Origin: Octopus sinensis
Lineage: Eukaryota
Length of the DNA: 64,000 nt
Reading direction: 5' to 3'
Assembly: GCF_006345805.1 (NCBI RefSeq)
Contig: NC_043003.1
Coordinates: 95,356,001 to 95,420,000, forward strand
Positions 31,601 to 34,600 of this stretch are shown here, one piece after another. The position numbers were made by a program, and so were the translations under genes. The notes beneath the pieces were generated by a model. It had not been told where the DNA came from. It ran no database searches and worked only from the letters and a program-made list of their open reading frames with translations. How positions within the stretch are numbered: position 1 is the first letter of the stretch; every line of letters begins with the position of its first letter.

Positions 31601-34600
31601 GACCATCCCTTCATAATGTACCCAAACTAAATTGTTCGGCATGTCTCATTTTTAAGACAGTTAGTAATGATTTGAATGAAATTTGGTTACTATTTCTAGT
31701 ATATCAAACGACCACGTAGAAGCACCGTCTTGTCGTTCGAGAAAAATGGTATTATTCTATACAGTAATGAGTGATAATACGTATCTGGAAAAAATCATCT
31801 TTGTTATATCTTCTCACTTCTTGTTCGTAATTGCGGAGGTCTGGTAGAATTGGAAAGAATCGGATTAAAACTATATATATATAGTTGGAATTTACAAGAA
31901 AAAAAGACAAAGACAGGTGTGTAAACAACGAAAAGGTGTATTAGTTTAACGCTCGAGAAGGTGAGAAAGTCTCTTTTACGTTTCCAGTACATACATACAT
32001 ACAAACACACATGCATATATATATATATATATATATATATATATATATATATATATAATATATATTATATATATATATATATATATATATAATATATATT
32101 ATATATATATATATAATATATATATATATATATATATATATATATATATATTATATATATATATATATTATATATATATATATATATATATAATATATAT
32201 ATATATATATATATAATATATATATATATAAAATATTATATAATTAGGGCTTAGTAAAATAAATTACTTTGCCACATACTGAACTTAGTAGAAATAGCAG
32301 CCAAAAAAATTTTTCTTAGCATTTCTACTACTTAAAGAAAATTTCTCTCAGATAATGTTTACTCCAGACAGCTCACGAAGAAATTTTGAGCTGACGAAAG
32401 AAATGCTGATTTTATTTGGCTAATCTTGAAACGTTGACGTACTCAAACGATCTATGTACTTGTGATATTTTTCTGTATTTACCCCCAAACCTTCGTGAGC
32501 TGTCTGGAGTAAACATTATCTGAGAGAAATTTTCTTTAAGTAGTAGAAATGCTAAGAAAAAATTTTTTTGGCTGCTATTTCTACTAAGTTCAGTATGTGG
32601 CAAAGTAATTTATTTTACTAAGCCCTAATTATATAATGTAATATTTTGAATTCGCCTTAAATGGTCCTTTTACATACTGAACACTTGGTGAAATTGATTA
32701 ATTAATTAATTTTACCCTCAATTGTTGGTATATATATATATATATATATGTATAATAAGGGTTTTTTGCAACAAGTTGCTTAAACCACATACTGAAAATT
32801 TTAGAAATAGCAGCCAAAAAGACTACTATTTCCTTTTACTACAAAAATAAGTCTCCACAGACATCAATATTTGTAACTCACATATGGCAAAAAAAGAAGG
32901 AAAATAATGAAATTACACAGTCTTTGGTCAATTATGGACGTACGTTTCTGGATTAGAATCGTAATGTTGATTTCCTTTATCAACATAATTCCTCATAAAT
33001 CTAGAAATGCTAGGAAAACTTACCTCTTATATTTTCGATCAAGCGACATCGAAAAATATAAAAGCCAACCAGCATATCCACTTTTACACAGACAAGTGAA
33101 TTCGTATTTTCCTCCAGAATTCTACCACGTGAGTCACAAAATAGTACTGCCGAAAAAAAGATTCGTAGTTTTGTTGTAGGGGAGTAAAATAGTCATTACA
33201 GATATAGAAATGTCTGTAATGTGTATATATATATATATATATATATATATATATATCCACTAGGTCTAACCACGCGGTCAAAAAAAATTCCCCTTTCTAA
33301 AGGAACTGCAGTCGCTGAGCAACTGATATTTTAAGGGCAATACCATGTGACCAGCTTTATTAACAGCAGCCTATTTTCCTGTAGCCATCTTGGACTTCGT
33401 GTATTTCTCCATTCGGTAATCTAAACCTTGAAAGAGACGGTCTTCTGTTAGATGCCCGCGAAACTTTAAGCTGCATAGAGCCGAATCGAACTGTTTTAAA
33501 TAATGCATGTAACTCCTACTAAATGTGTTGAGTTCCCTTTTCTTTCGTTTGTCCTCTCACTCGTGTACACACACACACACACACACACACACACATATAT
33601 ATATATATATTATAGATATAGGGTAAAAAAATTATTAATTTATAATTAATAAATTTCACCAAGTAGTTTCGGTATGGAAAGGAGCCATATTCGGTAAAAA
33701 CCTATACAAGAAGTTTTATATATAATTATAACAATAATTAAGGGTTTAGAAACGAGTTGCTTAACCACATACCGAAAAATTTAGAAATAACAGCCAATAA
33801 CGGTCTTTTGGCTGCTATTTCTAAATTTTTCGGTATGTGATTAAGCAACTCGTTGCTACACCCTTAATTTTATATATATATATATGCTTTTCAAGGGAAC
33901 GAAAGTTTGTATTGAAGATGCGTATCGCCTTCACCTTCGAAACGTAGAGTAGATGAAACCATGGCGACTGAAGGTGAATTTTCCTTGTGTTATTTGTCTT
34001 GTACTCTATTTTTTCGTTGTTTAAGAAAAATGTCCAGTTCCTTGGTTTTGTGTTTATGTTTTCTTTTCTCATTGTGTTCGACGTTTTTTTTTATGTCCTG
34101 TACCCATATATGCATGTATATATACATGTAGAGGTAGGTACGTACATATATGTATGTATATATATGCATATGGTTTATTTATTAATTTTTATATATATAT
34201 ATATATATATATATATATATATATATACACACACACGTGTGTGTGTGTACGAGCGCATGTGTATTTATATGTTTACTTACAGTGTTTCACATTTTGATTT
34301 CTATTCAGCTTGCTGAAACATTGAAAGCTGTGAACAATATGGCAGATGCCGCGTGTAAGCTGGTGTACTATATACGGGATTTCACCTTTGTCTCATCCAT
34401 TATCACAATGTGCGTTATAAGCCTGGAAAGGTGAGGGCAAACATTATTAGTCTTACTAACTTATTCTTCTAAATTGTGTATAACAGTATCTATGAATATG
34501 CTCTTGGTGTTTACGTTTGTCACTGTGTATGTAAATGCTTGGATCTCTGTCGGTTTCAGCAATAAAAATTCGGATCTTTTCGGTTTGACCGGCAGTTTTT

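Follow-up and report, generated by a model that had tools for sequence, protein, structure and literature searches.

The stretch of Octopus sinensis DNA analyzed here (contig NC_043003.1, positions 95,356,001 to 95,420,000; 64,000 nt, referred to below as the window, in which all positions are counted) carries a hammerhead ribozyme motif in a long intron of a gene for a QRFP-like peptide receptor, i.e. a rhodopsin-type G protein-coupled receptor (GPCR). We consider it probable that this motif is the hammerhead ribozyme of a small retroelement family, likely made up of 5'-truncated or non-autonomous copies of a Penelope-like element (PLE), and that it is a young, O. sinensis-specific, lone sense copy. 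The original prediction had described an intact-core hammerhead at 32385-32447, in sense inside a ~12-kb intron of a GPCR gene; re-reading of the letters gave the same coordinates for every part of the motif, and tblastn placed receptor exons on both sides of it, on the + strand.

The motif (hammerhead 1, 32385-32447, + strand) reads TTTGAG-CTGACGA-AAGA-(22 nt)-TCTT-GAAA-CGT-TG-ACG-T-A-CTCAAA, has all of the core bases and is of type I, i.e. its open end is at helix I. Three helices of 6, 4 and 3 bp surround the core: helix I is formed by TTTGAG (32385-32390) with CTCAAA (32442-32447), helix II by AAGA (32398-32401) with TCTT (32424-32427), and helix III by the pairs A32431-U32440 (A15.1-U16.1), C32432-G32439 and G32433-C32438, closed by a UUGA loop. 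The core segment CTGACGA (CUGACGA in RNA; 32391-32397) supplies C3, U4, G5, A6, C7, G8 and A9, and GAAA (32428-32431) supplies G12, A13, A14 and A15.1. The cleavage triplet is legal, with A32441 as H17 (any base except G) and C32442 as C1.1, and the predicted cut falls between these two nucleotides. The 22-nt loop 2 (32402-32423) can form an inner 5-bp helix, giving helix II a layout of 4 bp, a 3x3 internal loop and 5 bp with no bulge between A9 and 10.1. Helix II is closed at 10.1-11.1 by A32398-U32427 and not by G-C. The stem III segment, ACGUUGACGU, is self-complementary when two G-U wobbles are permitted. The earlier proposal that stem III could pair either as 3 bp plus a UUGA loop in a monomer or as a 10-bp duplex with G-U wobbles in a dimer was confirmed as far as pairing is concerned, and RNAcofold predicts the 10-bp dimer stem. 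The motif was also recovered by a structural descriptor, and it scores 83.4 bits with covariance model R1. A C/D box snoRNA was considered for the same sequence and rejected, as the Rfam matches were at chance level, with 11-14 bits against gathering scores of 39-47 and no CUGA D box precedes the 3' stem strand.

Hammerhead 1 stands at the head of a repeat unit that consists, from 5' to 3', of a type I hammerhead, a spacer of ~115 nt, a conserved 3' block of ~80 nt and an optional tail of ~80 nt. Unit 1 occupies 32381-32728 on the + strand. A second unit lies on the minus strand, tail-to-tail with unit 1, with its 3' block at ~32739-32820 and its spacer at 32821-32930 (32739-32930 as a whole; nhmmer E = 4e-67 and alignment), and it is headed by a second, diverged hammerhead (hammerhead 2, 32989-32931, minus strand; 73.4 bits with model R1) that reads AUUAUG-UUGAUAA-AGGA-(20 nt)-UCCA-GAAA-CGUACG-U-C-CAUAAU. 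A MAFFT alignment made without structural input joined 32381-32650 (+) to 33000-32735 (-) from end to end and brought the two hammerheads into register. Global alignment by region gave 64% identity for the hammerhead region (z = 4.7 against shuffles), 70% for the spacer (z = 3.5) and 78% for the 3' block (z = 9.8). When the hairpin loop alone was aligned locally with copy 2 the match was not significant (p = 0.08), whereas the whole-unit MAFFT alignment and the global regional alignments were.

The two copies differ in ways that leave the fold in place. Four pairs show compensatory changes, namely three of the six helix I pairs and the pair 10.2-11.2, which goes from A-U to G-C, and 96% of the cells in the two-copy alignment are paired. 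In controls in which the pairing partners were slid by 1-3 columns, only 25-37% of the cells were paired and there were no compensatory changes. C3 and G8 of copy 1, partners in the active fold, are both altered in copy 2, to U3 and A8, a core covariation known from the hammerheads of schistosome PLEs (PMC4209133), and N7 and H17 differ within permitted variation. Stem III of hammerhead 2 is perfectly palindromic (ACGUACGU), the palindrome having been preserved through a 2-nt deletion in loop 3. The sole damaging change in copy 2 is an A.A mismatch at 10.1/11.1. Taken from the one relative that is available, the compensatory changes, the U3-A8 covariation and the retained palindrome therefore point to selection on the hammerhead fold within the repeat family, as opposed to an accident of this locus.

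The inverted repeat around hammerhead 1 can be understood from the same unit. Two arms, at 32228-32380 (minus strand) and 32491-32644 (+ strand), show 97-99% complementarity, interrupted by one indel in an A/T run and by several mismatches, and form a near-perfect hairpin of 153 bp with a 110-nt loop that contains hammerhead 1, which begins 4 nt inside the base of the inverted repeat. The whole element (32228-32644) folds at -253.8 kcal/mol. The hairpin with a hammerhead in its loop that had originally been proposed thus stands, although the arms are slightly longer than the 146 bp at 32235-32637 given for them. Searches with blastn first showed that parts of the arms recur nearby. The right arm is the 3' part of unit 1; it begins within the spacer (32448-32564, 70% identical to that of unit 2) and includes the 3' block at 32565-32644 (TTTTTGGCTGCTATTTCTA...TTCAGTATGTGG...CCCTAATTATA). 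The left arm repeats the last ~153 nt of unit 1 in inverted orientation; it is truncated at the 5' side and has no hammerhead (inverted-repeat search, MAFFT alignment with unit 1, nhmmer E = 2.6e-46). Its outer end adjoins an (AT)n microsatellite at 32015-32242 (TRF, period 2, 119.5 copies), which is itself preceded by (CATA)n(CA)n from ~31990. Unit 2 has no inverted arm. About 1 kb further on lies a third, hammerhead-free cluster (33634-33885; nhmmer, blastn and alignment), in which two 5'-truncated 3' blocks stand head-to-head at 33717-33885 (33717-33817 on the minus strand and 33793-33885 on the + strand) with arms of ~100 nt. A tail follows the 3' block only in unit 1 (32645-32728, followed by (TA)n at 32729-32750) and in fragment 3a (33634-33716, minus strand), the two tails being matched by blastn over 32661-32710 and 33688-33634. 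Every 3' end of the family copies abuts (TA)n.

Part of the 3' block recurs within the tail as a diverged copy in inverted orientation (CATACTGAA against TTCAGTATG), so full-length 3' ends could form an imperfect hairpin of their own around a TA-rich stretch. A second foldback was considered for the region 32738-33124 and rejected, as its halves are not complementary; homology to unit 1 is limited to the left part of the region and the minus-strand hammerhead. A pattern scan of metagenome DNA with the 3' block gave 0 matches; a protein-index search with the six-frame open reading frames (ORFs) of the element likewise gave 0 matches, and its 63-aa ORF has no exact database record.

Palindromes are a known artefact of long-read assembly, and the arms of the hairpin are ~99% identical in a structure that is carried by one assembly only, that of O. 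sinensis; the true locus might then contain only unit 1, without a left arm. This is barely credible, however, given that the arms are short, that the loop is asymmetric, that the arms differ by an indel and several mismatches, and that the family has another head-to-head pair at a distance of 1 kb. Such an architecture is moreover expected of Penelope-like insertions (PMC8557442).

We used the descriptor (stem I of at least 6 bp, stem II of at least 4 bp, stem III of at least 3 bp, loops of at most 40 nt) to determine how often such a motif would occur by accident. On both strands of the window it found a single site, hammerhead 1. In 594 Mb of first-order Markov sequence with the dinucleotide content of the window it found three (~1 per 200 Mb), which corresponds to a chance expectation of ~6e-4 per window and of ~25 in a 2.7-Gb genome. 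Because ~25 chance sites are expected per genome, the motif by itself would not be decisive in a genome-wide scan. It could accordingly be argued that the loop of a foldback or MITE-type (miniature inverted-repeat transposable element) DNA transposon acquired by accident a hammerhead-like string that never was a ribozyme, the more so as the stems of hammerhead 1 are weak and AU-rich, the Rfam models fail to recognize it, and the terminal inverted arms superficially resemble the terminal inverted repeats (TIRs) of a MITE. A chance origin of hammerhead 1 is nevertheless unlikely, and we regard this alternative as a distinctly remote one, because the diverged second copy carries compensatory changes: in a homologue, four double changes and the C3-G8 to U3-A8 covariation have left each of the three helices intact. 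The arms do not behave as TIRs either, since unit 2 lacks an inverted arm and the inverted copies are truncated at varying points, as in retroelement 5' truncation and not as with fixed TIRs. A MITE is ruled out by its defining features, i.e. fixed TIRs and target-site duplications: the arms measure 153 nt in one place and ~100 nt in another, and unit 2 is armless. Target-site duplications are not readable inside (TA)n.

To place the insertion in time, the orthologous loci of O. bimaculoides (L001) and O. vulgaris (L003), which align along the intron at 83-98% identity, were compared with the window. Over 31400-33900 the window itself matches the O. sinensis assembly GCA_006345805.1 at 100% identity. 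Neither species has anything in this intron that corresponds to the stretch 31872-33248 (the microsatellite plus units 1 and 2 with their flanks); in O. vulgaris, the sequence that matches the window after 33248 is directly preceded by a (CATA)n(CA)n(TA)n tract. As regards the third cluster, which lies outside this absent block, nhmmer found no family member in L001 or L003, and megablast gave no aligned piece of at least 300 nt between O. vulgaris and window 33593-34226. Conservation of the insertion across species, which had been suggested as a check, thus failed at the orthologous place in both relatives, and the hammerhead-bearing element is no conserved part of the receptor gene. Other blocks have come and gone here as well: 31441-31871 (430 bp) is common to O. 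sinensis and O. bimaculoides and lost in O. vulgaris, and a 480-bp block (L003 8693-9176; L001 34073-34554) is common to O. vulgaris and O. bimaculoides and lost in O. sinensis. The part of the intron around the microsatellites turns over fast. The identity between the arms (~99%) exceeds the 95-98% identity between O. sinensis and O. vulgaris, so a gain of the insertion after the split of these two species fits the sequence.

With regard to the nature of the retroelement, we infer the Penelope affiliation from architecture, because no ORF for a reverse transcriptase (RT) or GIY-YIG endonuclease was found. Published PLE insertions are marked by head-to-head 5'-truncated duplicates, an optional one-end tail, a target within a microsatellite and a hammerhead close to the 3' end (PMC8557442, PMC11167929). 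The octopus copies share the strong 5' truncation, as seen in most published PLE hammerhead copies, the inverted copy abutting the forward copy, the one-end tail, the microsatellite target (here (TA)n) and the position of the hammerhead near the 3' end of the unit (compare Craig et al. 2021, PMC8557442; PMC11167929). They differ from that architecture in that the units are only ~0.3-0.5 kb each and show no partial tandem (pseudo-LTR, pLTR) arrangement. The ribozymes likewise resemble the minimal hammerheads of Penelope elements (Cervera & de la Pena 2014, PMC4209133; review PMC6765202): both are of type I, have a short near-palindromic stem III that can become an extended two-copy helix III, lack a recognizable tertiary contact between loops 1 and 2, and diverge strongly with compensatory changes, with the U3-A8 variant in one copy. 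In both groups paired copies lie a few hundred bp apart on opposite strands, and most copies are truncated, dispersed fragments; dual hammerheads 100-700 bp apart on opposite strands have been reported in truncated PLEs (PMC4209133). The palindromic 15.2-16.2 segment with loop 3 that a double hammerhead needs is present in both octopus copies (ACGUUGACGU, with two G.U pairs, in copy 1 and ACGUACGU in copy 2). O. vulgaris contains Penelope families that have been active recently (PMC13282606).

Several observations weigh against this assignment, or against the history attached to it. Penelope minimal hammerheads have G10.1-C11.1, whereas the octopus copies have A-U or A.A; they have an unpaired base between A9 and 10.1, which the octopus copies lack; their helix I is of 4-5 bp as against 6 bp in octopus; and their helix II is a continuous 6-8 bp, as against 4 bp with an interrupted 20-22-nt loop. 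The octopus tail of ~80 nt is longer than the 30-40 nt of published PLEs. No RT or GIY-YIG ORF adjoins any of the octopus copies, and none was recognized among the scanned ORFs of the window. No Rfam hammerhead family matched hammerhead 1 at its gathering score, or at E<=10 with queries of 601 nt and 86 nt. Few family copies were found in the 158 kb of octopus DNA covered by nhmmer and covariance model R1: two with a hammerhead and three 3'-end fragments, all within 1.7 kb. The remaining 62 kb of the window yielded none, and neither did 94 kb from O. bimaculoides and O. vulgaris. Finally, a microsatellite-mediated deletion in O. vulgaris may be the alternative to a gain in O. sinensis, because the three species differ by several rearrangements at this spot. 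The Penelope-type fold suggested at the outset can therefore be upheld with respect to transposon origin, dimer-type stem III and PLE-like architecture, and not with respect to the minimal-hammerhead consensus, including G10.1-C11.1, from which the octopus motif departs.

The same departures, together with the lack of a Penelope ORF nearby, could instead indicate a hammerhead retroelement outside the Penelope group, either SINE-like (short interspersed element), as in Schistosoma, or retrozyme-like, that is mobilized by another RT, e.g. that of the abundant octopus LINEs (long interspersed elements). LINE fragments are close by (31036-31440), and unclassified SINE families number in the hundreds in octopus genomes (PMC13282606). 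A tRNA-like head was not found in the element, however, and the unit is not in a tandem array according to TRF, leaving the definition of a retrozyme unmatched. Palindromic head-to-head 3' duplicates with an optional tail are, on the other hand, described signatures of Penelope (PMC8557442, PMC11167929). On balance we find a non-Penelope origin doubtful. To our knowledge, LINE twin priming leads to the inversion of another part of the element and leaves the 3' end unduplicated.

Metazoan non-LTR retrozymes are similar in being small non-coding units, some hundreds of nt long, that bear a type I hammerhead whose helix III is weak and palindromic (Cervera & de la Pena 2020, PMC7229834; bioRxiv 10.64898/2026.07.22.740005), and they are themselves thought to derive from Penelope pLTRs (PMC7229834; bioRxiv 10.64898/2026.07.22.740005). 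Retrozymes form head-to-tail arrays with one hammerhead per unit, whereas in octopus TRF gives dinucleotide arrays only and the two hammerheads are on opposite strands; a strict retrozyme was rejected on these grounds.

Intronic hammerheads that serve as a comparison for the host gene are also known. The amniote ribozymes HH9 and HH10 show ultraconservation between species, possess stable helices as well as tertiary contacts and are recognized by Rfam, whereas hammerhead 1 is species-specific, weak and unrecognized by Rfam. Like them, the octopus motif stands in sense within a protein-coding gene, in one of its long introns (de la Pena & Garcia-Robles 2010, cited in PMC4209133, PMC7229834).

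For the Penelope-like family we propose the following course of events. Unit 1 would have entered a (TA)n microsatellite along with a second copy of its own 3' end, inverted and more severely truncated at the 5' side (32228-32380), and this insertion would have created the 153-bp hairpin with the hammerhead left in its loop. In the life cycle of the element, we infer from the modeled folds that two copies on a multimeric or tandem transcript would pair their palindromic stem III regions to give a double hammerhead, which would then cut the multimeric transcript to unit length. RNAcofold predicted such a double hammerhead, with a 10-bp helix III and a swapped helix I, at -30.2 kcal/mol as compared with -19.2 kcal/mol for two monomers (2 x -9.6). 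The monomer fared less well: predicted occupancy of its helix III was 0.13 for the isolated motif and 0.03-0.05 in context. The hammerhead fold lay 0.4-2.0 kcal/mol above the minimum free energy (MFE), the isolated 63-mer being within 0.4, and 8.3 kcal/mol above it when only the left arm and the loop had been transcribed. No sign of loop-loop tertiary contacts was seen in hammerhead 1.

In the intron the situation would be different from that on a multimeric transcript. The intron block contains one sense hammerhead; hammerhead 2 is antisense, and the receptor pre-mRNA therefore has no cis partner for the dimer. The pair at 10.1-11.1 is a further handicap, as the N7 of G10.1 and the phosphate of A9 form a metal site and changes there lower the rate. 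G-C at this position is highly conserved in canonical as well as Penelope hammerheads (PMC4209133); for the effect of A-U at 10.1-11.1 the literature searched gave no quantitative figure. Cleavage by Penelope minimal hammerheads was undetectable for single motifs and low even for dimers (PMC4209133), and in the one, active, Penelope element tested there were no RNA ends at the hammerhead site (PMC11167929). Because the sense copy is alone, its predicted stem III occupancy is low, its 10.1-11.1 pair is A-U and the published relatives were inactive, little or no cleavage of the receptor pre-mRNA is expected, i.e. the lone hammerhead would cut it rarely, if at all. The long stem should be handled as other repeat-derived double-stranded RNA (dsRNA), by ADAR hyper-editing and possibly dicing. 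Octopus has among the highest hyper-editing signals, tied to repeat-derived dsRNA (PMC5625713), and because this signal is so high, editing by ADAR, and perhaps processing by Dicer, of the 153-bp stem as a generic substrate is a reasonable expectation that implies no regulatory role.

A cleavage or editing switch serving the receptor gene had been put forward as plausible, with the intronic hammerhead cutting the nascent receptor transcript, or the hairpin recruiting ADAR, and either being co-opted to tune expression. The motif is indeed in sense, with an intact core and a legal cleavage triplet, the hairpin of 32228-32644 is very stable (-253.8 kcal/mol), and repeat-derived dsRNA is heavily edited in octopus (PMC5625713). 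We nevertheless judge such a switch highly improbable, and the evidence does not support it: O. vulgaris and O. bimaculoides lack the element in the orthologous intron, the dimer lacks a sense partner, stem III occupancy is predicted at 0.03-0.13, the 10.1-11.1 pair is A-U, and single Penelope-type hammerheads are inactive in vitro (PMC4209133). The depletion of retrozyme-type hammerhead repeats from Xenopus introns suggests, in addition, that such insertions are deleterious rather than useful (bioRxiv 10.64898/2026.07.22.740005). Neutrality for the host gene is more likely, i.e. the insertion would be transposon baggage and not a gene switch. We also think it very unlikely that the insertion alters expression of the QRFP-like receptor in O. 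sinensis relative to O. vulgaris, by occasional co-transcriptional cleavage or by ADAR or Dicer processing of the hairpin; if it did, two sibling octopus species would differ by a very recent cis-regulatory change borne by a transposon.

In the literature searched by full text, no description of an octopus hammerhead ribozyme turned up, and the repeats described here would add octopus to the animals with documented hammerhead-bearing Penelope-type repeats. The family may represent a cephalopod hammerhead variant, with A10.1-U11.1 and an interrupted long helix II, that is missed by current Rfam models and descriptors. As the Rfam models fail to detect this combination of an A-U pair at 10.1-11.1, a long interrupted helix II and a U3-A8 sister copy, censuses of cephalopod hammerheads probably give counts that are too low. 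The outcome is deflationary with regard to the receptor gene, the element appearing as a young, species-specific passenger and not as a conserved control device, and a specialist in ribozymes or transposons would find little surprise in it. It does offer a natural test case: a lone sense hammerhead sits in the loop of a long hairpin within a neural-type gene, the animal's ADAR activity is extreme, and the insertion is missing from a sibling species.

The host gene was identified by joining stop-to-stop frames with GPCR segments for a protein search, which returned Octopus "QRFP-like peptide receptor"; a search with the first GPCR exon alone had given no match. With an octopus QRFP-like receptor as the query, tblastn placed coding exons at 8276-8344, 19247-19687, 22199-22327, 34297-34431 and 38209-38334, and further exons at 45593-45805, 48872-48943, 50217-50399 and 52464-52649, all on the + strand. 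The intron that holds the element spans 22328-34296 (11,969 nt) between the coding exon at 22199-22327 and that at 34297-34431, which runs from TM3 to the ERY motif, and the element ends 1.65 kb upstream of this downstream exon.

Other mobile elements share the intron and its surroundings. A hAT-type transposon at 27669-30542 has two long open frames (28457-29353 and 29350-30351, + strand) with Spin-doc zinc-finger, DUF4371 and hAT dimerization domains; neither O. bimaculoides nor O. vulgaris has it at the orthologous site, and it is therefore another young O. sinensis-specific insertion in the same intron. A 3' fragment of a LINE, containing the end of an ORF, lies at 31036-31440 between two blocks that are contiguous in O. 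bimaculoides. A short, dispersed and unclassified repeat occurs at 31872-31995, directly upstream of the microsatellite, and again at 36587-36703 and 57841-57932, its copies being 74-80% identical. Outside the intron, identical 113-aa ORFs at 20544-20885 and 21390-21731, 846 nt apart, form a tandem duplication and have an "NRPDIV...D...E" motif and no Pfam match; the motif resembles the restriction-like endonuclease of R2/Dong-type LINEs.

A further hammerhead-like motif was seen on the minus strand at 44981-45027, antisense to the receptor gene, and reads CCATTA-TTGACAA-GACC(AAACAA)GGTC-GAAA-TCATGCGA-T-C-TGGTGG. It is of the U3-A8 type with G10.1-C11.1, is present as a single copy, and occurs in all three octopus species at the background intron identity of 90-96% (L003 of O. 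vulgaris, ~19146-19180; L001 of O. bimaculoides, ~46260-46320), although in O. bimaculoides position 10.1 and helix I are broken. With its own descriptor the chance rate is ~1 per 17 Mb, or p ~0.02 for the 316 kb scanned, and the motif could be either an old decayed element or a chance occurrence. In other introns or flanks of the receptor gene there are remnants of Mariner/Mos1-type transposases (HTH_48), at 45984-46499 on the + strand and at 56340-56957 on the minus strand.

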